DNA of 64,000 bases from Syncephalis fuscata S228 (lineage: Eukaryota > Fungi > Zoopagomycota), in assembly GCA_025786725.1 (NCBI GenBank), contig JAHLTZ010000011.1, forward strand, positions 310,001 through 374,000. The letters run 5' to 3'. The notes beneath the pieces are model-generated. The model was not told the DNA's origin. It searched no databases and saw only the letters and a list, made by a program, of their open reading frames with translations. The first letter of the stretch is position 1. Every line of letters begins with the position of its first letter. Shown one piece after another: positions 2,205 to 54,053 of this stretch. Position numbers and translations under genes: made by a program.

Positions 2205-5200
2205 TTAATTAAATGGCAAGACACCCTGATTTCTTTCGGGATCTTGTAGTTTAAGTACACGTACATCTGGTCCTAATTGAATATTACTAGTGACATAATA
2301 GCATTATTAATAAACATATATATATATATATAATAACCGTTAATATATCTATATTCACTTACTCCATACTTTGTGGTGTAATAAGAATAAATTGTGTTCG
2401 TTGAGCAAGTCGAGCACTATCGATGATCATACGTGTACTAATAGATCGATTAACTGCATCCATAAATACATCGTATTCATCTAGTCTATATATTATATTG
2501 ATGGCATTAGCTATAGTATACTATTTACTAGTAGTAATTACCCTCGAATAGGACAGCCCATCGATTCCCATAGAGCAAGTAATAAACAAATAGTTGAAAA
2601 TGACTTCTCACCACCTGATAATGACCGTGGATCCTTTTCAGCTGTACGATCTTGTACATGTTCATCTGTTTGTACCTAGCAATCAATAGAATAAATATAT
2701 GAACAGGTGTATAAAAGTATAAGAGACGGCGTTGGCTTACTCGTGGTGTCAATCGTCGTTTCTCGTGATCAAATTCGAGTTTGCCTGCATAGCCACGTTG
2801 TGACAAGTTCCATAAAAAGTTATGACGAGCTCTTCTAGCTACCAAATGCTTATACGCTTCAAGTCGCTTTAGTCGAGTTGCTAATGCATGGTTTAATAGC
2901 TACAATGGATCATGATTACTATCTATGAATAGTGTTTATAGACTGTATACTATGGATTACCTCTACTTCTTGACCTATACGTTCAAGGTCCTTTTTTGCT
3001 CTTCGATAAGCATCTTGTTTCTGATTCACTTCACTAATCACTTGATCTAATGTGGCACCAATACTAAATCAAATAGTGTTACAAATATATTAAAATAATG
3101 ATAAAATACCCACGTTCTTTCGGCTTCTTCAAGTCGCAGTTGAATTTGATGAATTTCTCGATCCAGTTCACCGGGTGGTTTAGTTACTTCAACGCGTTCT
3201 GGACAGTAAGAAGCTGCTTGTTGTCTTGCTGCCTATAAGCTACATGTTAGCACTAAATATAAATAACTAGATTAATACTGTCATACTTCTACTTTGGCTT
3301 GATGCTGTTCCCGTTCATCATGGACAGCAGCGATACGTTCAAGTTCATCACGTTGTTTACGCATCCAGTGTTGAATTCGAGCATCACATTTAAGTTGTTC
3401 AGTACGCAATTCATCAATACTTTCCTAATAGATTAAATAGATCAGTATATGTTATTCTTATTATCTATATAATGTACAATACTTACATTAATCTGACTTG
3501 TTTTCTCCTTGCCTGTCGTTAATTCCTCACGTATTTGTGCCAACTGTTGCTTTAATTCCGTTTCTTCACTTATAACACGATGCCTTTCCGTAGATAGTTG
3601 TGCATATTGTTGTTTTGTCATATCAATTTCCCGTTGTGTTCGCTGTTTCTCTTCTTCAATTACTGCGAGATTGGCCGGTTCAATTTCCTAGTAATCAATC
3701 GTTATTAAATTAGTGATATGCTCTATAGTAGATTATTACTTGTAATTTATCTTGCAGCTCTTCTAATTGACGACGAAGTTGCTGAATGGTTCTTCGGCCT
3801 TCATTGGTTGTTTTCTATCAAAATATTAGTCATTATATAGTGATCATTAGTGATCAATTGTTCAACTTACTTGATTTGTACGAATCTGCTCGTTTATTTC
3901 TCGTTGTTGCTGTCTAAGTTGCTGTGTATCTACTTCAATCTCTTGTAATTTCCCTCGATGTACTTCTTTCTGCGCTTCACATTGACGTAATTTCTGCTGA
4001 ATATCCACTGTAAATCGAGGTGGTCCAGTGTACTGAGACATAGCAATAGTGGCTGATCCACCCGATCTATACTAGCAACTTAATAATGTATATATTATAA
4101 TCTACTATCCATAAACACTTACCGTGTGCCAATACTAAATCCTTCCCGTGTATAACATGCAGTGACATTGGAGGGAAATCCATTGCTCATAACACGTTCA
4201 GCCTCAATACGTTCTTCAATAAGTACAATTTGTTCAATACGGTTTTGAATGACCAATTGACGTGTTACCATTGGATGGCTAATCTATTAATATGAATCAA
4301 ATAAATGCTCTAATTAGTGCTAAACTAATTAAATAATAGTCTAGTTACATTAAGAACACGTAATACAGTTAGAAATCGACTATCTGGTTCACCTCTTGAA
4401 TGATCATGAGTGGGATCATCTGGCGTTACATAAACTCGAGATTTTCCACTACAATAAATAGTAACTATTAAACAATAGTAGTAATAGCAATATTATTACT
4501 GACCATTGATGTGCACGTAAAATGTGCATTAAACGTTCTTTATCGGCATGATTTGTAACAATAAAATCACCCAATGTATTGCCTAATAACGATTCAAGTG
4601 TATCGGCCCATTTAGATTCAATTAATTTTACGTAATTTCCTAATCATTAATTAATATTAATATAATAAACCATATTTACATTTTATTTACTAACCCAATG
4701 GTCCAATAGGTACTTGATGCCATCCTTTATCCCGTTTAATAGCTGCTAATACCTGTGGCACTGTTCTGCCAAACGCCTTTATACGGTCTGTTTGTTGTTC
4801 CCGCATCGTTGTAATATATCGTTGTAGCTTTTCCACCTCCTCATTCTCCTGTTGAACATCTCTATTATGCCTTGACATTTGTTCGCCTAATTGATTAAGC
4901 TTTATTTTCAACTCTTCTTCTGTTTATAACACTGAATTTCTTCTTGACGTAGTTCTGTAATACTTTCTTGGATCTTGACAATATCATCGTTAATTCGATC
5001 ATTATTGGATCTATTATTCTATAGTTAATATATTTTATATTTATTTCATTTGTAAATACAATACTTACTGGCTATTTTGACGTAATTTATTCGTTTCTTC
5101 TTCAATTGTTTTTTGATGTTCATTAAAAGCAGCGCGTAATCGAACAATTGTTGAATTCATATCACGTTCTTCATTCTATCATTACATTATATATTTAACT

Positions 5201-7968: not shown

Positions 7969-8509
7969 TCTGGTTAAATCGACGTATATTTGGTCGATAA
8001 CCGTAGATCCAAGAAAAGAAGAAGGGAAGAAGAGGAAATTGACGAATAGATAGCCAATATACTAATATTTATGGTTAAAAATCAAGAGTTATTTCACTTT
8101 AAATTTCTATCCTTAAACTGGGAACAAAAAGATCCATAACTCAAATAAACCGTCGATCAGTTTTTACTACTAAAAAATGCTATTTGTTGGAGCAGTGCAC
8201 ATCTCCAATTAAATTAATCAGTGTTTAATTAATCGACACTATTTTCAATATTTGATATTAGCAGTAATAAATATTATAGTATTCCATGTTACTTACAATA
8301 AAATATAATAAATAGATAAATGTTGATTCATATTATTGTTGTGTCAGTATTCAAAGCATTATAATTTATATTTAATGTCACTCACCATCCAGTTCCATGT
8401 TTAGTAGAACAATAAATGTGTAGTTCAATCAAGTAAAGGATGTCAATTCTGGTCTTTTGACACTGGAGCAAATAAGTCTACTAATAAATTAATATATAAA
8501 AGTTATACG

Positions 8510-10100
8510 TTGGCTCTCACATTTTTTTTATTTATTTCACTCTTCTTTTTTATCACTATTTTATCGTTCTATTCAGTAATATATTATTTGATAATGTCAA
8601 ATATAATAATATAAATGGCATGTGTATTTAAGCATCAATACAGAACATTATTTAATCTCTAGTTTTTATTTCTCTCATTGTCTACCAAACTGTTTGAAAA
8701 GCTATGTTTATTAGTATTGAAAAACTGATGATTACCGCTGATGAGTTTAGACTTGTTGGCAATTGCAAGTTTAAGAGAAAAATATTGATTCAACAAGATT
8801 ACAGTTTATTTGTTCTCATAAAGACCGTTTCAGCAAGTGTCAGTTTGTTTTGGCTGCCAGAAAACAAAAGACTAGTAAAGATTGTCCAATGCAATTTTAA
8901 CCATATTAATGATTGTGCATATGATTGTGGTAATAATACTATTAAATCTATTACTAAATCTATTACATATAATATTACTACATTCTTAAATATAAAACCA
9001 AAAGATGTACAAGTAAAAGTATTAAGTACATATTTAATTATTCAATACACACCAACAATTATAACAGCTCAGCAGATGTTATTATTTCTTATCACAAAAC
9101 TTGATCTGTTTTAGATTTGATAAAAAGACATTGTTACAATATTAGTAATAAAATGATGTATCATTGACCAGGCAACCAAAGGAGGAAAAGAAATAGGAAT
9201 AGTAGCTTAGCCAAATGTTTTAATATCAATTAATAAAGAATAACATCAGTATTAAATGATTTAACCTATAACAATAGCTCAAATTAGCATATTTATAACA
9301 AAAGTCGTAACTGTATAGATTCTGATAGCAAACTAAAATGAATTGGATTATAAAAGTCATTTTTATTATTATTTGAATAACAGTATTGTGTATTTACAAT
9401 ATTACTAAATAATAAAAGTTACAAAGCTAAAAATTTCTGATGGGAAAAAGTTGATTACAATAGTTGCAACAATTTTAATTTAAAATCTTATTCATGTAAT
9501 TAGTTGATTATAGCAATATTAACAGCAATGCCAATCGTGTTTTATTTGCTAAAAAACTTTTAACGATATACTTGTGACAAATGCAACTAAAGAACGCAAT
9601 ACAAGAACACGCTCTGCAAGGATTAATATTAAGGATATTGAACTAGTAGTTAATACTGAAATAAACGTCTTTATTAAATAGATACAAACTAATAATGAAG
9701 CAACTATTAAAATAAATAAAGTGTAATGCAAACAAAAATGATTTAATTAGTAAATATTTTCAAATTTAAATTTAACCACAAATAAAATTAGAATATTTTA
9801 TTCAGAGTGTTTCAGATATCATATTTAGCAATTAAACAATTCTGAATTACACGAAAGTAGTATTGCTTTAATTAACTTGAATTAATTAGCTGATGTATCA
9901 AACAAGAGTGAAGATATGCAAAATAATGCCGTCAACATGGCATTTATCATTGGCAAACTAGAACAATCTACTCGTAACATTCATTTTAAACATCGCAGTA
10001 GTCGCTCCGATGTCATAATTTAGAAAAGCCGTGGAACATGGCGAAAGAAGCTTAAAAGGGTGTTATGACGGATCATTTAAACCACTTGATTTGTATTAAA
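8510..10100 (+). mobile_element. Highly decayed transposon relic, possibly Fanzor-type
   Basis: 8510-8680 is similar to 15670-15840 in direct orientation; broken frames with a Cys-rich start and NMAFIIG(K/N) near 9935 loosely resembling the Fanzor FIIGNW segment; GATCATTTAAAC at ~10071 also occurs at ~16384. Confidence 0.35.
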
Positions 10101-10988
10101 TCTTATGATATTTTAGCAACTAAATAAAATAACTTTTTTTACAATACTAGCATATTATTGATTGTTTAATGTGATTTAACAGTTAAATAACTATAATAGC
10201 CACACATTTAAACGAAATATCCGTGTTATTGAAAATGAAACTGGCTGCTGGGTGTCATTGATTATTAAGCTATTTATTTATCATTATTATTGTACTGTAC
10301 ATATCTATCTTGTATACACATACTATATTTTGTCTATATCATTAATATTGTAGATTGTAGAAACTATATTAACAAAAGCTAAAGTTTATTGCTAACTGTA
10401 TTATTTAGTAGATTTTGATTTATTTTGTTTATTACGCTTGGTTAATTGCATACAGTATAGTTTCACTATCACTATTCACGTACTTGTTTTGTCTATTTAT
10501 TTGGTTTATAATATTGTATACTTTATTGCCCTGTTTTATTAAAAAGTGCCTTTATTCTAATTTCAGCATAATATTATTTGGCTATATGATAATAATAGCT
10601 TTGCTACTATTATATCAATCTATGCTTATAGCTTACATGATATAATTATACACTTTTGTTGATTTAACTATTTGATCAATAATTGCATTATTGGATACAA
10701 ATAGAACATGATTATAGATTAGCATTTGATTGTATATATTTAAGATGAAGCCATAAGTTTATTACTATAAGCATGCACAGTTGAATAGTACAACTAGATG
10801 CAAACATGTTGGTAACATAATGATTCCATTGGTTAAAGACTGGATAAACCGGAGCATTGGCCAAAACTTGATATATAATAGACTGGACGGCGTATTTGTC
10901 AAATTCTTGATTTTCACCAATATATACCTAAATGTATTGGAATAGTGGTTCGATTGCACCACCAATGCTAATGTCTTGAAGCCATCGA

Positions 10989-13844
10989 TTATACTGTATT
11001 TACAAATAAAGATATTATATGCCATAATTAATGTATAAGCCATCAATATACAATAATACTTACTGCCTATTAATATTAAGTTATTGATACACATAATACA
11101 TGGTATATAATTAATTTATAAGCTGTCAATATACAATGCTACTTACGACCTATTAACATTAAGTTATTGATGCACATGGTGCATAACATTTAATTAGTGA
11201 GTAATCAATTAATATACAATACAACTTACATACTATTAGTATTAAGTCATTGATATACATGGTGCATAGTATAAATTAGCGCATATTTAGTTAATGCATA
11301 ATACAACTTACTGTCTATTATATTAAGTTGTTGATGTATACGACATATGATACATAATTAGTGAGTAGTCATTTAATAAAAATACAACATACTAGCTATT
11401 ATATTAAGTTGTTAAAAACAAAATACATAGTATATAATTAGCAAGAAGTTAATCGACACATAATACAACTTACGTCCTATTATATTAAATTATTTATACA
11501 TAAAGTACATGGTATAGAATTAGTGCATATCTAGTTAATACATAATGCTACTTACCGCCTATTAATATTGATTTGTTGATGCACACAATAAATAGCATGT
11601 GATTAGTGCATATTTAATTAACATACGATAAAACTTACAATCTATTAATATTAAATAGTTGGTATCATCAGCAAATAGCATAGTCAATGTATAGTCAGTT
11701 AATATATACTCTCACTTACTATCTATTAATAGTAAATAATTAGTATAATTAGTAAATAACAGGCAATGTATATTCAGTTAATACACAGTATCACTTACTG
11801 ACTATAAATATCAAACAATTGGTATAATCAGTAAATAGCACAGTTAATGTATAGTTAGTTAATGTATAATATTACTTACAGCCTATTAATATTAAACAAT
11901 TGATATAATCAGTAAATAGCATAGTTAATGTATAGTCAGTCAATATATACTTTCACTTACAAACTATTAATGTTAAACAATTGGTACAGTTAGTAAGTAG
12001 CATGATTAATGTATATTCATTTAATATACAATACTACTTACTAGCTATTAATATTAAATAATCAATACAATCATTAAATAACAGTTAATATATATTCGAT
12101 TAATATACAATACAACTTACAATCTATTAATATTAAATAATTGGTATCATCAGTAAATAGCATAGTTAATGTATAGTTAGTTAATATATAATGTCACTTA
12201 CAGGCTATTAATATTAAACAATTGATGCAGTTAGTAAGTAGCAGCTAATATATATATATAGTCAATTAATATACAATATCACTTACCGACTATTAATATT
12301 AAACAATTGATACAATCAATAAGTAGCATAGTTAATGTATAGTTAGTTAATGTACAATATCACTTACAATCTATTAATAGTAAATAATTGGTACAATCAG
12401 TCATTATTATAATTAGTGTATAGTCAGCTAATGTACAATATCACTTACGTTCTATTAATATTAAATAATTGGTACAATCAGTAAATAGCATGGATAATGT
12501 ATAGTCAATTAATATACAACATTACTTACGTTCTATTAATATTAAATAATTGGTACAATCAGTAAATAGCATGGCTAATTTAGTCAATTAATATACAATT
12601 TCACTTACCCTCTATTGATATTAAATAGTCGGCGCAATTAGTAAATGGCATGATTAATGTATAGTTGGTTAATATACAATATTACTTACTCTCTATTAAT
12701 ATTAAACAACCGGTACCAGCAATAAATAACATGTGATTAGTGAGTAATTAATTAATATGCAATACAACTTACGACCTATTAATATTAAGTTGTTGATGCA
12801 CATAATTCACAATATGTAATTAGCTAATAGTCAATTAATGTACAGTATAGCTTACATTCTATTAGTATTGTTATTAATATAGATGGTGCATGGATATAAT
12901 TAGTGAGTAATTAGTTAATATACATACAACTTACTAGCTTTATATTAAATAGTTGATGCACACAGTACACGGTATATAATTAATACATAGTCAATTAATA
13001 TACAATACAACTTACCAACTATTCCATTAAGTTATTGATACACATAGTGCATGATACATAATTAATTTATAAGCCAGCAACATCAAATACCACTTACTGC
13101 CTATTAGTATTAAGTTAATGATATACACAAGCATAATATATATTAGCTAATGCCCAATTATTATACAATATAACTTACATGCTATTAGTATTAAGTTATT
13201 GATATACACAACGCATGGTATAAAATTAGCGCATAGTCAGTTAATATATAATACGACTTACCAGCTATTAATATTAAATTGTTGATATACACAATACATG
13301 GTATATAATTAATTTATAAGTCATTAATATAAAATATCACTTACCGCCTATATAATATTAAGTCATTGATACACACAGTACACGGTATATGATTAATGCA
13401 TAGTCAATTAATATACAATATAACTTACAATCCGCTAATATTAAGTTATTGATGAATACAGTACACGACAAATAATTAGTATGCGTTCTATTGACATGCA
13501 ATACGACTTACGAGCTATTAATATTAAACAATCGATACAATTAGTAAATAGCATAATTAATGTATATTCAACTAATATATATTATCACTTACTGACTATT
13601 AATATTAAATAATTGATACCAGCAGTAAATAGCATAGTTAATGTATAGTCAATTAATATACAATACAACTTACCATCTATTATAATTATGATTTAGAAAT
13701 ACTGTTAGTAAACAAAATGTTATGACATATTTATTAATATTGCAACATACCACGACGAACTAAGGCTGGCTTAGCATCCACAATGGTTGTAGCGGCCACA
13801 AGCGCGACAACAATGGTGCAAACGGCAGCAATGGAAAGCTTCAT
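10989..13844 (-). CDS. Micro-exon gene encoding a 66-aa secreted Cys-rich prepropeptide (35 exons: 94-nt first coding exon, 33 micro-exons, terminal exon)
   Basis: Exon 1 13844-13751 (signal peptide + KPALVRR + G, donor GTATG); 33 AG|exon|GT units from 13676 to 11064; terminal acceptor CAG at 10996-10994, then A|TA TAA. Spliced ORF has no stops and gives C-x2-C-x3-C-x10-C-x3-C-x4-C. Confidence 0.88.
11059..13690. repeat. Tandem array of 33 units, period 79-85 bp (homologous introns, each with a micro-exon)
   Basis: Recurrent plus-strand CTTAC-NNN-CTATTAATATTAA; the central NNN differs between most units. Confidence 0.97.
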
Positions 13845-13979
13845 GGTGATATTGATTTGTTAAGACAAACAAATAAGAGAGATAATAGAGTGTGGTTGGT
13901 GTAAAGTGGAGAGTAGTGTGTTTAGTAAAAAGTAGAGTATGATGATGATATCGTAGTTGGATGTGTATATTTTGTGGGC

Positions 13980-13987
13980 TATTTATA
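13980..13987 (-). promoter_or_regulatory. TATA box (TATAAATA) of the micro-exon gene
   Basis: Canonical TATA ~136 nt upstream of the ATG at 13844, followed by a C/T/A-rich leader. Confidence 0.55.
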
Positions 13988-14189
13988 CTTACAGCTATGC
14001 TGAGATACTGGTATACTACAGTATACGAGATATACCATTGATGTGTAATATGAACCAATAAAGCAATCCAAATAATGGCTTGAGGTGCACATGTACCAAT
14101 AAATTCATGGCGTGACAGCATGCTTTCTAGTCTTGATTTCGACCTGCTCGGCATTTACACAAATGACACGGCAATTTTAATGAGCAGTG

Positions 14190-14592
14190 CATATGCAATA
14201 GAGATAGGCATATCATTCTATATTTTTTTGTTACAAGGTCTAACTATTTGGTAAAAACAAGTATATTGTTTGTTTTGTAAAAACGATAATGATGCCTTTA
14301 CTGTCGCTTCCACCGAATGACTCGGGTCCCAATATTTGCATGCATACAAAATAACACATAACCTGCCCGGTCTTTACTTCAATCTGCTACTCGTTTACAC
14401 GAATAACACAATAATGATCATAATCCAGTACATATGCGATAGATATAGGCATATTATCCTGTATTTTCTATTACACAATCTAACTATTTGGTGAAAACAA
14501 GTATATTGTTTGGTTTTGTAAAAACGATAATGATGTTTTATTGTCACTTCCATCAGATGACTCGGGCCCCAATATCTGCATGCATACAAATA
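14190..14592. repeat. Imperfect direct duplication of ~160 bp (14190-14351 and 14431-14592)
   Basis: TAACTATTTGGT(A/G)AAAACAAGTATATTGTTTG...ATGACTCGGG(T/C)CCCAATAT(T/C)TGCATGCATACAAA occurs twice, ~240 bp apart. Confidence 0.9.
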
Positions 14593-15669
14593 GTGTACAA
14601 TATTGACGCAAAAACAAGTTTAATGTATCAAACTAGTATTTTATACAGGTTTTTACTGCCATACATAAGCCAGCTGTAACTTTTTAAATTATAAAGTGTA
14701 TTGATTGGTACATGTATGCATTTCATTCGACACTATGCCCATTTTTATGGGGCAATCATTGCTTTGAATTCACAAATACAGCACATCAAGACATATTATG
14801 CCACATGCTGTGCAACTGCCATCATTCAAATGACGGCTAATCCAAATTACCTGAAATCGACTATACAATCAGTACTGTTTGTAGCATGATGCATCACAGC
14901 ATTTTGAGCAATAGAACATTCAACAAGTCATTTTCGTCATCAGTTTTCAAATGTAAACCAAATTTCATCGGCTAAATTACACACAATACAATATGCAGAC
15001 ACTAGTTAGACACAATAGAAAGTTCTGCTCAAATATCAGCAATTTCGAGTACATAATGTCAATGGATTGCATATAAACCGGTAATCATCCAAGGTCTAAG
15101 TGCTGCTTACATTTCTGAAACCAATCCCGACAAGTTAAACAAAATGGAATATAGAAGAACAAGTCAGAGCAGAAACCAATAGAAAAACTATTAGCAGCTT
15201 AAATGCTTACTGGTTTAATCTATAGCAAATCATTATAGCTATGCTAAGCTGAACTACATTTATCAAAAGTGGTTGTTACGGATGCGATTAGAACAGCAAC
15301 AATGTTAAACCGAGATAACTCACAGAAAACAGAGAGATGTAAATAAAATTGAATTAAGTTTAGTAGTCAAATAACTTATTATTGTCACTATACTTTATAA
15401 TTCTGGTTGTTTGTGCGGATAAATATTTACAATCACATTGTAACATCTTATATACTCACATTTACACGACCACCAACTAAGCCAACTATTATAAAGCTTA
15501 ATCTAATTATTTATCAGAGTAAACAGCTGATATTATACATTATTGCAATGATAGAAAAACAGATTAATTTCATTTATTGCTCATTAATAAAAGCTGTATA
15601 GCTACATATTAAAATAAAACAAAATATTGGATTGAGCGCATAATATTTATATGGTCATGTCATTTTTAC

Positions 15670-16400
15670 CTTGACTCCACATTTTTTATTCATTCATTTC
15701 ACTGATTTTTCTATTGCCATTTTATTTTTCTATTCAGTATTATATTATCCGATAATGCTGAATATAACAATATAAATAGCATGCGTATTTGAACAGCAAT
15801 AAAAAACACTATTTAATCCCTAGGCTTTATTTCTCTTATTTACATAACACCTGTTCAAGTAACCTCAACAACATGGCGTATATTCTGGTTACAACTGTCG
15901 CCACAAGATCTTTCTGGTGAAGACACTCAGTTTACCATTATTGCTATGATGAAGATCATTTGCTTTATCAATGATTGGCAAATAAACTGCGCCTACCAAG
16001 TTGATAGCAAGAATGCTCAAGAGAATGGTGAACATCAAAAATGCTAATCGTTCTTGCGAATATGCCCAAATGCAACATTAGAAAATTGGAAAATAAAAGA
16101 GCCCATTCAGACGCAACAATCCATGCTGTACATAGATGCAACAGTAACAAATGCGAAACGATATGGGATCGCGATCAATGGTTTCTATTAATATTTTATC
16201 AATTTTTCTACACATGGCCAACAATAATAATTGGCCTCAAATGATCCAAAGAAATCAAATACTATGTTACATTATTTACTTAAATGCTTAAAATAGCAGC
16301 TATCGATACAATGTTCTGTTACATTTAATTCTATTTTATGAAAATGATAATGTTATTATATTACATTAATGCTTATTGTAAATGATCATTTAAACACAAA
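15670..16400 (+). mobile_element. Internally deleted Fanzor/TnpB-like element relic (zinc finger plus RuvC-III end)
   Basis: Broken frames APTKLIARMLKRMV; PKCNIRKLENK...IHAVHRCNSNKCETIWDRD; after a shift MVSINILSIFLHMANNNNWP, matching the Fanzor W-N-R-D-x-M-A-S-x-N-I C-terminus. Confidence 0.65.
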
Positions 16401-16558
16401 TTAATCCAATCAACTCGTTAACTATTTAAATCATTACGATCGATTGCGTAAAATGATTTGCTGCCTTGGGGTATTAAAATAAATATCAATCAATCAAGAC
16501 ATCATAAATTTTTGTCTCTCTTATTTGATTTTACTTGTTTCTTTGATTTTGCCTTGTA

Positions 16559-20877: not shown

Positions 20878-21991
20878 GATAATTTTTAACTTGTCTAGTA
20901 AATCAAAGACTTGTTCTAAAAAAGTATTCGTAAATAATATTGAGGATGGTGCAGTTTAACGAAAACGTTAGCCAAAAGTGGAGAGTGAATATTGGTAAAA
21001 AGTTTCTTAAGCCTGCGCGGTATTTTATAGCAAATTTCTACCTCAGAAATTGCTGTATTTATGGGTATGCGGCTGTTGCGGAGTCATGTACTAGGTTTAG
21101 TGTAAGGCGGATATTCAACTAACACGGCAATTAGTCTAATGAGGTAATTGCCATGATGGTATACAGCCAGCATAGAAAGCGCAGTTGCTGAATTTAAAAA
21201 TACAAAATTACTTCAAGGTTAAATCGCCATTGCCACATTTATTATATACATCTCTAATAGCAAATCGTGTGTTAAAACACTTATGATTTAAAATAACATA
21301 CACGATCAACAGATTTTAAATATGTCAAGTTAGTCAAGTTGTAAATATAAAATTTAACACTGTTGATACAAAATAAAAAATACTTGATCACAGTCTACTA
21401 CTATGGATCAGTAACGTGTATGGAAAATCATAATTTGAAAACAATCTGAATTTTAATGTAAATCAGGCGATAGTTTAAGAACAGTTTATTTGAACATAAC
21501 AAATGGTATATCCAAACGAAACACTAAATTGTCAATGACCCGATCCAAATTACACACTCAGTTTAGCACTGCGCTACAATCTCCTTGTATAATTTCATCA
21601 TGTAATTGTTGCTTAGTCTAGAGTACATGAAATGTATATATATATATTGCGCAAGTATTCCTTGCTATTTTCACCTAAAAATTAACTTATTATGATTAAA
21701 AAGCAAAAGTGTAGCAAAGTAGCTAGTATAGTAATTAGTCATAACTCTACTTTTTTGTTGTAAAAGCAATACTGTTAATGAATTAGTAAAATAGTGCTAA
21801 ACAAAATCTGCAACCAGCAGATACGGCAATGCCGTTGCGGTTATTTGAAGGTACAAAATGTATAATAAAATGAAGAAAAAATGTTACGAATGTTCATAAA
21901 TATTGGTTAAAAAAATTAGTAACGGTCATTAAAAATGATCATTGTTATTATGTTGTTTAAAATCGATAAACTCCAAGGTAAATTAGCTTTT

Positions 21992-22840
21992 TCAAAACCG
22001 ATCCGATATAATACCACTCAATTATAGACTATCAAAAATATATTTGAAATTCAAAACAGCAGCCAAGTCGCAATGCCACAATCTTGCACCTGTAAAAAGT
22101 TTCATAAGTTTTCTTACAATTTTGGTTTGTGCGCCTACAAACAATCTAGATGTTAAAATAAAATATTCATTTGTATTCAGTCTATAGGTTATAGTACCTT
22201 AGGAGGCCATGACACTTTACTTTTGGGTGATTGCGACGCTGATACAGACGTGGATTATCGATTATTTTAAATGTTTCTAAACTTAGAGCTTGACAAGTAG
22301 GACGGGTTTAGAGCTGTTATACTCATCAATTAAAAGCACATTAAGACCGCTCTTTTGAAGCATACGCTTCAAGTCAGCACTTCAAATAGCTTCTTGAAAC
22401 TTTACATGACTTACAGTCCAGTTACCAAATATCAAAGTAGCATCACTATCAAACTTGGATTTAAACTTATTGGCAAGCTTTTGATCAGCTTGCTGTCGTC
22501 TAATGTACGAAGATGGTTTTAGTTTTCTGAACAGCCAGTTTTATTTGATAGAATGTATATTTGTTTGATAGGCGTAATATGGTGCAAGATATTGGCTGGC
22601 AACAACACGAATGGCGAGATATTTTTCAAAATTAGATAAATTAATAGATTTGGTTTGACATTAAGACAGCAATTATTTTTTCTTTAAACATCGGGGCACT
22701 TTGCTTTCAATTCCAATTTGATTATGCGATACCTCTTGCCTCGGTATCAAAATGTTTTTGATTTGAAGTATATCTGTAGGGCATTGACTCTTGAATGATA
22801 CTGAAGTTATAGTGTGCGTATAAGCAAGATGACTATAAAA
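21992..22840 (-). mobile_element. Fanzor1 (TnpB-like RuvC nuclease) pseudogene, 5'-truncated, with a spliceosomal intron
   Basis: YRYTSNQ..GKRYR; KSINLSNFEKYLAIR; SYIRRQQADQKLANKFKSKFDSDATLIFGNW; MLQKSGLNVLLIDEYNSSK (RuvC-II E); CHGLLR|RTNQNC; RLWHCDLAAVLNF (RuvC-III D); internal stops and frameshifts. Confidence 0.85.
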
Positions 22841-25435: not shown

Positions 25436-26135
25436 CCAATATCTTGCACCATATTACGCCTATCAAACAAATATACATTCTATCAAATAAAACTGGCTGT
25501 TCAGAAAACTAAAACCATCTTCGTACATTAGACGACAGCAAGCTGATCAAAAGCTTGCCAATAAGTTTAAATCCAAGTTTGATAGTGATGCTACTTTGAT
25601 ATTTGGTAACTGGACTGTAAGTCATGTAAAGTTTCAAGAAGCTATTTGAAGTGCTGACTTGAAGCGTATGCTTCAAAAGAGCGGTCTTAATGTGCTTTTA
25701 ATTGATGAGTATAACAGCTCTAAACCCGTCCTACTTGTCAAGCTCTAAGTTTAGAAACATTTAAAATAATCGATAATCCACGTCTGTATCAGCGTCGCAA
25801 TCACCCAAAAGTAAAGTGTCATGGCCTCCTAAGGTACTATAACCTATAGACTGAATACAAATGAATATTTTATTTTAACATCTAGATTGTTTGTAGGCGC
25901 ACAAACCAAAATTGTAAGAAAACTTATGAAACTTTTTACAGGTGCAAGATTGTGGCATTGCGACTTGGCTGCTGTTTTGAATTTCAAATATATTTTTGAT
26001 AGTCTATAATTGAGTGGTATTATATCGGATCGGTTTTGAAAAAGCTAATTTACCTTGGAGTTTATCGATTTTAAACAACATAATAACAATGATCATTTTT
26101 AATGACCGTTACTAATTTTTTTAACCAATATTTAT
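25436..26135 (+). mobile_element. Inverted duplicate of the 3' part of the Fanzor relic; intron 25834-25896
   Basis: Reverse complement of 21896-22595; carries the FGNW, IDEY, CHGLLR and WHCDLAAVLNF segments. Confidence 0.85.
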
Positions 26136-27550
26136 AAAAAATTAATACTGCATTATCTTTAATACACTTTAATTGTACATATTAGCAAGCACTTGCCATT
26201 ATTTAACAATCATACTAGCCAATAAACAATTTTATTTACATGTATATCATTGAAACAAGTACTCACAGATTTATTATTGCTCGTGACTGCCAATTGTTTT
26301 CTTTTGCCCAATTCTTATCGCCGTCTTTCAGTTTTACAATCCACAATATAACTTCTTGCCTATTATGTATAACATTATACTTACTTGCGGTCAATCTTGT
26401 GCAAACTTGGTTTTTGGCCTTATTTCACCACTACCCCTTATTCTTGTATCCCCCATCGGATTACAGCCGCCTGCAGCAACAGCCAGATCGATACTTGAGT
26501 AAGGAGACAGGTAAGATGTTAATGCAAATGGCACTTACACTACCGCAGCAAATAGCCATAAATTATACTTTCTAAATATTTAGTACTATAATTAATACAT
26601 TCAGCCATCTTTATGGTTTAAAATGCTTTTATGTAGGTACGTACATATGTGTATACATACATGATAACGTACCAATGACAAGTATTAATTTGGCAATAGG
26701 CCACTCACGTCGTGCGCCTACTTGCATCATTACCTGCTTATTTTTCAAGTTATTAGCTTGGCAAAAAGTATTATTAATGGCGTGTTATGGCTAGCATAAT
26801 GATTATAAGCCATTCAATATTTGCTATTCATAATAAACAACACTATTAACAAAGCAACAAAAGCATTTTTATTATTATTATTAGTAGTAGTATTAGTAGT
26901 AGTAGTAGTAGTAGTAAATAAACAGTATTCAATAGGCTTTTGCAGAGGCTTTGGTCATACGACCTTTTTTATAGCCACACGCAACAAGTTTTCGATCACT
27001 GCACCTCTCAAGCGTTTTCATCCTCCGCCAACTGTCTTTTGTCGAATTCTTCTTCCGCTTTTCTTTACCGCCATCGTTGTTCGTCACCGAGTCGCTTTCC
27101 TTGGAATAGTTGGTTTACCATTCGTTTCTGGTTGGATAATTAAGCACGCAACGTGGTTTCTAGTCTTTATTAATACAGTTTATTTATTACTATTGACTCA
27201 TCAGGCATTGCGCCGTTATTTGGCCGTCAATACACCTACTCTTCTACTCGCTCTCTCTCTCTATTTCTCTCTCTATTTCTTCTCCTAATCTAATATTTCA
27301 AAAGCAACTGAATGTGGTACGAATCTATCTAAACTGGTTCGATAGAAGAGGCTTATCTATTGTCTGGGCCTGCGAAGTGTCCCATTGATATCCTGTCCCT
27401 TATTAGTCATCCTGCGCAAGTCATCTGTGTCCCAACGTATACTTTTGTAGAATCTCCTTTATATCTAATACTAAACAACTCCATAGTCTACACGTATATA
27501 GCTACTGGTAGTCTTTAATCTTTTCTTTATTCATTGACCTTGCCGTATCA

Positions 27551-51599: not shown

Positions 51600-53440
51600 T
51601 GCTTTATTTCTGTTCAGTACTGTTGTTCTAGTTGTATCAAAATTGCTTGAATTTTTACTAAACTTGATCTAACAGCATGATCTTAATGACTTGCTTTTCG
51701 TTTATTAGCTCAATGGTAAGACTAGATCAATCAATATTTAGATAGTCAATTGCTTTCATTGACCTATGTTTTAGTCGGTTGTTCTGCAAACAGTCTCGCT
51801 TGGTTTTTTGTCAAAGCCGCTTTTAGAAACATAGGCTATCAGCTAAACCTCAAGTGATTACTGCTTGGTGTGTGTTCTGTTGCTACTACGCATCCAAGTT
51901 TGACTTTATTTGAATAAAGCTGCCTGGCGTGCATATCCTATTAGCCACAAATTGTATTACATGTAATCTGATGAATACAAGCTATTTCTCAGTCAAACAT
52001 TCGATGGTACGAATAATTAAATGTAATAGTTTACTCTTAAGAATGCTGTGATGCATTCTACTACAACAGTTTCTATTGTATAGACAATTCTCAGTCAATC
52101 TTGTTTAGTTGTCATCTCAAATACCGAAAGTTATACAGTGTGTGGTATCGATGCGCTTAGGAATAATTTCTTTGTAAATTTAATGCACTGCTTATTCTTG
52201 TAAAATTTCCATAATGTCGAGTTGAATACACGCATGCACCAGTCAGCATATTTTGTAACTAAACGAAACTCGACTAATTTATGTATAACAGTAAATAACA
52301 GTATAAATACTAATCTGATGTATTAAACTTGTTATTGCGTGTTTTTTGCATGCTACTCGGTATGCATGCAGATATTGGGAACTGCACGAGTCAGTAAAAG
52401 CAACAACAAAAGATAACAGCATTGCTTTTACAGAGCTAATCAATTTTCCCATTCTCACCATATAGCCAAATTGCACAATAAAAATACAGGTTAATATACA
52501 CATATCTATCGCATATTTACTGAATCAAGTTGGGTGGGTCATTATTATTGCCGCACCATCCGCGTAAATGCTGTGCTATATAACGTGCATACCAATAAAC
52601 TAATATTAATAAAATGCGAGTGAGAATTTATATTAACTAGCTATAAACTAATTGCATCCCATATATTTTATGTATGAACAAATAAATGTAATATCAGTAA
52701 ATGACAGTTTATATGCAATAACTATACACTAATTACATGCTATGGTCTGCGGGTGTCAGCCACATAATACTAGTTGTTAAGTACTATTATACATTAATTA
52801 GTTATTTAATAATGGCGCCCATTTACTTTATATTAATAGCATAACATTAATAGAAAGTAAGCGACATTGTGTAATATTGATTATTCATTAATGAAATGCT
52901 ATTTAATTCATATATCAATAGCTTAATATTAACAGGATGTAAGTTGCATTGTAGTTAATTAGCTATGCGCTAATTACATGTTATGTACTGTGTCTATCAA
53001 CAACCTAATATTAATGGGTTGTAAGCTATATTTTAGATTATCAGTTTATGCATTAATTATATGCCATGTAATATATTTATTTATAAATATAAAATAGTCG
53101 GCGTTTTAAGACACTAGCATTATTGATAGCACAATTTAAGATTATTCCAGTACACTTTAGTATATATTCGGTGGAGGCAAGAACATTTGATAAATATGCC
53201 GTTCAGTCCATTCATATATCAAGTCATGGCTAATGCATCGGTTTATCCAGTGTTTAATCAATGGAATCATTATTTTATCAACAGGTTTGCATCTAGTTGT
53301 CTCTATTCAACTGTGCAAACTAGTAGTAATAAAATTATGCTTTCATTATAGCTATATTCAATCGAATTTTATATTTATAATCATGGCTTATTTGCATTTA
53401 GTAATTAGCAAATATTAGTCAAATGGCTGAATTAATAACA
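51600..53440 (+). pseudogene. Decayed, internally deleted paralogue of the micro-exon locus (inverted relative to it)
   Basis: 52040-52520 matches the reverse complement of ~14425-14910; 53100-53440 matches the reverse complement of ~10660-10990; residual units TAG|AAA|GTAAG (52854-56), CAG|GAT|GTAAG (52936-38), TGG|GTT|GTAAG (53018-20). Confidence 0.8.
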
Positions 53441-54053
53441 GATTGCTAGTATTATAATAATAAATCAGCATTTGATAAACACAAAACTTGGCACCTAGTT
53501 GTTGTTTATTTACGTATATATAATTGTATTATATACAATTAGAAATGACACTAAATTCTGTTTTATTAATTAAATTCATTATATATATATAAAACATTAA
53601 AACATTAAGATCATGGTATTTAGCAAACATTGTATGCTTGGTACACTTATGCTGTTAAACACAATAATATTTTATTTGAATAATTAGATATTTGTGTATT
53701 GAATAAACCAAGTGTGTAAAACAGTCAACAATAATGTTATTAGATATAAACAAGATTATTATGATACAGTGTAGAGCAATTAGAAGACGAAACAAAATAA
53801 ACAAAATACTGGCTGTTCAATATTTAATAGAGTGCTAAATATTTATAAACTTTTTTGTATTCAGAAAAAGTAAAAACAAACCATCAAATCAAATCGTCAT
53901 TCTTCCACCTTAGTGCTTCGCGACTTTAACAACAATAACAACACGACCGCCACTCCATTCACATCTTGTCGCATCACTAAGCCCAAACCCAAAGGGAACA
54001 GATATATGTTGTTTTAATATAATACACATAACACAGCGATTTATACTGGTATA

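Follow-up and report, generated by a model that had tools for sequence, protein, structure and literature searches.

The window analysed here is a 64,000-nt stretch of one contig of Syncephalis fuscata S228, a member of the Zoopagales (Zoopagomycota) and a mycoparasite that develops as a haustorial parasite of other fungi. A neighbouring HSP70-like protein has a 99% match in S. fuscata, and locus L001 (contig JAHLTZ010000011.1 of GCA_025786725.1) equals window 7039-29236 at 100% identity. Between a UPF0203 gene and a ribosomal L16 gene, the public annotation contains zero genes over a gap of 8.6 kb. This gap harbours an array of 33 micro-exons, preceded by an exon that encodes a putative secretory leader and followed by a terminal exon, and a decayed copy of such a gene lies elsewhere in the window. 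The features are as follows (labels such as L010 denote loci retrieved for comparison):

8107..16285, no strand: duplicated module of ~8.2 kb including the focal gene, ~82% identical to the L010 locus
13979..13987, - strand: TATA-like box, shared by all array paralogs and L005 but missing from the retrocopies L004a/b and L007
13845..13951, - strand: 5' UTR of ~107 nt, its presumed start being placed from the 5' end of retrocopy L004b
13751..13844, - strand: coding part of exon 1 (94 nt), i.e. putative signal peptide, a short propeptide whose final RR forms a putative Kex2-type site, and one more base, which leads to phase 1
11064..13676, - strand: 33 micro-exons (32 of 3 nt and one of 6 nt) with homologous introns between them, encoding 34 residues of the mature peptide
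13429..13434, - strand: the 6-nt exon, which keeps the frame as a new AG exactly 3 nt upstream stands in for the usual acceptor AG, now lost
12690..13347, - strand: exons 6-14, matching the intronless retrocopy L004a exon by exon (21/27 bases, 5/9 trimers identical)
10742..10993, - strand: terminal exon, with the last two coding bases, the stop codon (10991-10989) and a conserved 3' UTR
52042..53441, + strand: decayed paralog with upstream flank, six eroded units and terminal exon, exon 1 being deleted

In S. pseudoplumigaleata, 300 bp separate the UPF0203 gene from the L16 gene, and in Thamnocephalis 450 bp separate the HSP70-like gene from the L16 gene; these short intergenic distances indicate that the focal gene is a lineage-specific addition at its site. 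The whole module (8107..16285) is missing between the same flanking genes in both fungi. Direct repeats of ~640 bp bracket it (window 15664-16285 and 8503-8679; L010:7301-7946 and 15173-15815); their identity is 97-100% in L010, whereas the window has lost some of their length, and part of their sequence is dispersed elsewhere. These repeats, whose ends display no clear TG...CA, may be how the module moves. A 240-bp tandem repeat in two to three copies is located just 5' of the promoter (window 14130-14590; L010:9020-9626). The window also carries a 703-bp direct repeat (21893-22595 and 25436-26138), 99.9% identical and 3.5 kb apart, which is either an LTR-like pair or a recent duplication. 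A search of window positions 8000-16500 against Rfam gave no match.

The list of 33 exons proposed by the first-pass annotation, with its coordinates and its donor and acceptor counts, was recovered exactly. The micro-exons extend from 13676-13674 to 11066-11064 at a spacing of 71-87 nt with no missing unit, so that no unit has been picked or passed over. All 33 are of phase 1-1 and are separated by mutually homologous introns of 70-82 nt, with 32 GTAAG donors and one GTATG, and 32 TAG acceptors and one AAG. Exon 1 ends in phase 1, directly before GTATGT, and the stop codon falls in the terminal exon, as had also been proposed. Exon 1 is conserved in at least 16 annotated proteins of S. fuscata; its signal-peptide and Kex2 roles are inferred from its sequence. 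At the 5' side, the homology between L004b and the focal gene ends at -107, ~30 nt past the TATA box. At the 3' side, the terminal exon carries AATAAA at 10763-10758, with cleavage near 10742, where the retrocopies end in an A-run.

The stop-free reading with six Cys that had been deduced for phase 1 was reproduced junction by junction: the junction codons specify 35 residues and 0 stops, and the six Cys are spaced 2,3,10,3,4. Among 100,000 shuffles of exon order, the probability of no stop is 0.107, that of at least six Cys 0.0013 and that of both 0.0005; thus shuffled trimer orders, which had been named beforehand as a refuting test, give a stop-free six-Cys peptide in only 0.05% of trials. 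The other phases yield no Cys (phase 0) or three stops (phase 2). The conservation pattern is equally uneven. Indeed, the AG and GT are 100% conserved across units versus a majority of ~77% at the neighbouring intron positions, units differ by 0.74 per base in the trimers versus 0.36 in the intron flanks, and GC content is 42% in the trimers versus 18% in these flanks. This combination of invariant splice sites, intron bodies conserved at ~77% and near-random GC-rich trimers is unlike a neutral satellite. Only in the arrays and in the decayed copy do neighbouring units of this type recur at a spacing of 65-95 nt.

Exon 1 used alone as a query retrieved seven hypothetical proteins of S. fuscata and a profile search 15 clusters; among the matches found, no homolog of exon 1 belongs to another organism. 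Seven family loci were retrieved for comparison. Four of them (L006, L008, L009 and L010, with 16, 40, 28 and 35 micro-exons, respectively) share the focal layout, i.e. promoter, exon 1 with its phase-1 donor, array and the same terminal exon. L008, L009 and L010 each specify exactly six Cys in phase 1 (shuffle P 0.0007, 0.0001 and 0.0011), and the phase-1 reading of L006 is open and Gly/Phe-rich. When the arrays are pooled, internal junctions include 0 stops out of 145 versus 9.7 expected, a value never reached in 20,000 shuffles. Over the five array genes (focal and four paralogs), 146 of the 152 micro-exons are 3 nt long. Five are 6 nt long (one each in the focal gene, L008 and L010, two in L009), and each of these results from loss of the AG and use of a new AG 3 nt upstream. 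The only 2-nt exon (L008:13806-13807) falls within a run of G, and its twin unit at 13967 carries three G; this exon is probably an assembly error rather than a recent true frameshift.

None of the 152 units of the five array genes has lost its splice sites, a count for which the detection of paralog units leaned partly on splice-site similarity, with a regular spacing that shows few gaps. The decayed copy of the window has lost the canonical sites in four of its six units and in the terminal acceptor (intact sites 152/152 versus 2/6, Fisher P=6e-7). Splice sites therefore decay once a gene is dead, which implies that those of the intact copies are maintained by selection. Five related, transposon-like inserts of 330-830 bp are all located within introns. 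They map at L006:11246-11580, L008:10186-11010, 11501-11880 and 13091-13495, and L009:10746-11250, share a T-rich 5' end and occupy a nearly identical position in the repeated intron; they possibly correspond to a site-preferring non-autonomous element. As regards existing annotation, reconstructing the public model P0014 (predicted or transcript-based) from L010 demands two consecutive 3-nt exons, which fall where the present analysis places them. Another model, P0008, was dropped as evidence, its exon structure having no fully canonical solution. P0010, P0013 and P0015-P0019 are further family members, several of which resemble mis-predicted array genes.

Other family loci are intronless. 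In L004 (two copies), L005 and L007, exon 1 leads directly into the mature region, then into the common 3' UTR. L004a and L004b are devoid of promoter and flanks; in addition, the 5' end of L004a is truncated. Both terminate with six successive A ~15 nt past AATAAA, precisely where homology stops; L007 ends likewise. Lack of introns, lack of promoter and an A-run end at the poly(A) site are the hallmarks by which, on their sequence, L004a/b and L007 are identified as processed copies. L005 retains the promoter and has 1 kb of downstream sequence in common with L008, as expected for a putative intron loss in place. A later tandem duplication of the L004 pair blurs the ends of the retrocopies. 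A diverged family-like ORF (L004:9514-9820 and 10784-11090), with a similar prepro region ending in RR but Lys-rich and without Cys frame, has been duplicated in tandem along with them. At L007:4357-4434 (- strand), a diverged segment resembling exon 1, with a matching piece of 3' UTR at 3221-3443, is probably one more processed copy.

The order of the codons in these intronless copies follows that of the micro-exons. Along 22 consecutive exons of L010, L004a agrees at 46/66 bases, with five successive trimers identical (score reached by 0/400 shuffles); it also matches L009 over four exons (15/15 bases) and the focal gene over nine exons (21/27 bases, 1/400 shuffles). L005 matches L010 over 14 exons (36/45 bases, 0/400 shuffles). 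Shuffled orders thus reach the match scores in 0-2 out of 400 trials. The Cys spacing 2,3,13,3,3 is common to L004a and L010, and the retrocopy nearest to the focal gene derives from a paralog, not from the focal gene itself. The ordered match between L004a and L010 means that trimers spread over 1.7 kb of repeat appear joined in an mRNA-derived sequence. Such copies act as fossil cDNAs and are the strongest evidence for splicing at the DNA level.

Taken together, the four paralogs, the colinear retrocopies, the decayed control, the 6-nt exons that keep the frame and the inserts confined to introns make it highly probable, on genomic grounds, that the focal locus is a real spliced gene. These genomic lines support the inference of the first-pass annotation that a secreted Cys-rich peptide would be encoded here by a spliced gene. 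Under the reading that we favour and hold very likely, the gene would be functional and constitutively spliced, and would belong to an S. fuscata family in which the prepro exon is conserved and the mature region hypervariable. The spliceosome would remove 34 short introns and join 33 phase-1 micro-exons, each codon consequently associating one base of one exon with two bases of the next. Splicing would presumably proceed by intron definition, since an exon of 3 nt has no room for factors at its two ends, and since the introns combine small size with strong donors.

The alternative that survives best is inspired by the micro-exon genes (MEGs) of Schistosoma, with which the locus had been compared from the outset. 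MEGs have 10-20 exons, mostly of 15 bp, and introns of 0.1-5 kb (10.1101/2023.06.21.545858), have been reported only from flatworms and are missed by automatic annotation (10.1101/2023.06.21.545858; PMC4350168), and diversify by alternative splicing (PMC4350168). The comparison holds for the architecture. Indeed, as in MEGs, an exon for a (here putative) signal peptide is followed by mostly very small symmetric exons (33 of 3 or 6 nt here), in a parasite multi-gene family that has a predicted secreted product and is missed by automatic annotation. Unlike MEGs, the focal gene has exons of 3-6 nt only, mutually homologous tandem introns of ~78 nt and a fungal host, and it displays no sequence similarity to them, all the homologs found being from S. 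fuscata. The array might nevertheless serve an isoform library by exon skipping: every exon being symmetric, any skip would be frame-neutral, as in Schistosoma (PMC4350168), and the public models P0014 and P0008 end in intron read-through that may reflect partial splicing. However, there is no sign of selection on skip isoforms. The junctions that would be created by skipping one, two, three or four exons include 6/140, 10/135, 9/130 and 6/125 stops, versus ~8 expected, i.e. stops occur at chance rate, in contrast to their absence from the full-inclusion junctions. Selection would therefore act on the fully included product and not on the pool of skip isoforms. Furthermore, each Cys requires two adjacent exons and the retrocopy match runs gap-free over 22 exons. 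Combinatorial splicing is thus unlikely.

Two other scenarios are less probable still. An intronless ancestor could have been invaded at every codon by an introner-like mobile intron, the intronless paralogs then being ancestral. The homology of the introns, the near-identical introns that flank different trimers, the promoter and downstream flank of the intronless L005, and a family tree that fixes no direction (the trees of the 5' and 3' parts are unresolved) would all suit this scenario. However, it needs insertions at exactly each third base and always in phase 1. Moreover, L006, L008 and L009 display units duplicated in tandem together with their trimers, and L004 and L007 carry the ends of processed copies; we regard it as very improbable and, even if true, it leaves the gene spliced. 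Alternatively, the family could have been spliced in the past and the focal copy be a young pseudogene that has fallen silent or is spliced wrongly. A decayed copy does exist in the same window, the focal gene is unannotated and one of its acceptors is AAG, but no damage is seen in any of the 34 introns, the TATA box, the start and stop codons or the poly(A) signal despite ~18% divergence of the module from its closest paralog, which leaves this explanation just as little credence. Lastly, a neutral satellite whose unit contains AG and GTAAG by chance, as the 81-83 bp array reported by Tandem Repeats Finder might suggest, can practically be dismissed, being contradicted by invariant splice sites next to hypervariable GC-rich trimers, by stop avoidance in five genes and by ordered matches to intronless coding sequence.

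For the constitutively spliced gene, a mode of evolution can be proposed. The array would grow and change as complete units, each an intron with its trimer, are duplicated or deleted without any effect on the frame; such duplications are seen in the paralogs, with identical trimers (GAG three times in L006, ACG twice in L008, a four-unit block in L009). Reverse-transcribed mRNA has occasionally yielded intronless copies, namely those whose retrocopy hallmarks are described above. One-to-one orthology of units between paralogs is not readable from the introns. Short gene conversion would homogenise introns, or swap or retain trimers between near-identical arms, selection on the peptide acting as a filter. 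Indeed, units whose flanks are at least 95% identical (2.7% different) still differ by 62% of their exon bases (15 pairs), and conversion is preferred because point mutation alone is unlikely to give diverged trimers in near-identical flanks. As trimer reuse is weakly above chance, this step stays an inference, and we give conversion-driven swapping of codons an even chance.

The 66-aa product would be secreted and cut after RR, releasing a 35-aa peptide; the hydrophobic N-terminus and the RR site are conserved in sequence across the family. The mature product is probably a Kex2-released, disulfide-bonded peptide folded as a helical hairpin, which three disulfides would lock. Folds were computed on the intronless paralogs P0012 and P0006: the mature part of P0012 is predicted as a two-helix hairpin (helices 5-19 and 25-39, pLDDT 85) and that of P0006 as helical (pLDDT 84), so that a hairpin appears likely from these models. 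Foldseek with P0012 gave nigellin-1.1 and vicilin-buried peptides as top matches, all weak (E 3.2 or worse), and no match of the paralog models had an E below 3; Pfam searches of exon 1 and family proteins gave nothing significant, and a sequence search of the PDB no match. The peptide might act at the interface with the host fungus or with microbial competitors. This role, suggested by the association of a conserved prepro region with a hypervariable mature region, is somewhat favoured.

Plant alpha-hairpinins and related disulfide-bonded helical hairpins, among them nigellin-1.1 and vicilin-buried peptides, are precursor-released peptides of 30-45 aa with CxxxC motifs on two antiparallel helices (PMC7191063). 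Their C-x3-C-xn-C-x3-C pattern is contained in the focal reading (spacing 3,10,3), but with six Cys instead of four, and an alpha-hairpinin-like helix-loop-helix is predicted only for the intronless paralog P0012. The focal family differs further by its fungal origin, and neither sequence nor structure comparison scored significantly (E 3.2 or worse). Alpha-hairpinins are plant defence peptides with measured antimicrobial or inhibitory activity, whereas the focal peptide is the putative product of a fungal gene. The array family also resembles conotoxin-like precursors, i.e. multigene families with a conserved signal and pro region and a hypervariable mature peptide framed by Cys, in its contrast between prepro and mature regions; no homology is claimed, and the conotoxin-like mature peptide sits on one exon.

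Arrays of the same kind are not restricted to Syncephalis. A metagenome scan with a two-unit pattern gave 11 loci, 10 of which are runs of 5-40 3-nt units (L021 overlapping L019); the eleventh, L020, was discarded as a chance match with no array, and viral contigs gave 0 occurrences of the pattern. L011-L019 and L021 belong to metagenome contigs WNFZ01/WNGA01 and Ga0137367, in which the arrays are unannotated. At least four of these arrays run in phase 1 into the exon of a kinase whose best named relatives belong to Funneliformis geosporum and Rhizophagus irregularis. In F. geosporum itself (CAMKVO010001265.1), at least 18 unannotated units precede a kinase exon (L022:46-1870). The 140 adjacent junctions of the mycorrhizal arrays include one phase-1 stop versus 6.2 expected (P=0.003) and 41 phase-2 stops; phase 0 has no stops, but the link to the kinase exon sets phase 1. 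These arrays often read as Asp/Tyr/Asn-rich stretches. The mycorrhizal and Syncephalis arrays may or may not share an origin: the 5' halves of their introns look alike but are very AT-rich. We slightly favour the view that tandem arrays of introns and 3-nt phase-1 exons are a general gene-building device of early-diverging fungi, used for peptides in Syncephalis and for kinase N-termini in mycorrhizal fungi. Under this view, introns would serve as homology arms, so that residues could be singly added, removed or swapped without frameshift.

From other fungi, only isolated 3-nt exons are known (PMC12230235). The Coprinopsis cinerea annotation includes 27 exons of 3 nt in 26 genes, and fungal spliceosomes handle exons of 1-3 nt (PMC12230235); this is about one micro-exon per gene versus 32 consecutive 3-nt exons that make the whole mature product here. 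Searches of the literature on micro-exons, Syncephalis and mycorrhizal genes, in which subscription journals were thinly covered, turned up no account of consecutive arrays of 3-nt exons. We rate the focal gene as an extreme, independently evolved new form of micro-exon gene, and its tandem codon-unit mechanism stands a fair chance of being new in itself.

Such a gene pushes exon size to its limit, with 34 splicing events for ~100 coding bases and splice sites three bases apart, and makes intron definition and the order of splicing across consecutive micro-exons directly testable. It amounts to exon shuffling at single-residue resolution, in a hidden family of candidate secreted peptides of a mycoparasite that public annotation has missed or mangled. 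The kinase-gene arrays of mycorrhizal fungi furthermore suggest that the proteomes of early-diverging fungi are systematically incomplete. If the general device is real, it would give Syncephalis a library of secreted peptides and mycorrhizal fungi variable N-termini of their expanded kinases, and would reveal a hidden coding layer that annotation now discards as satellite DNA.
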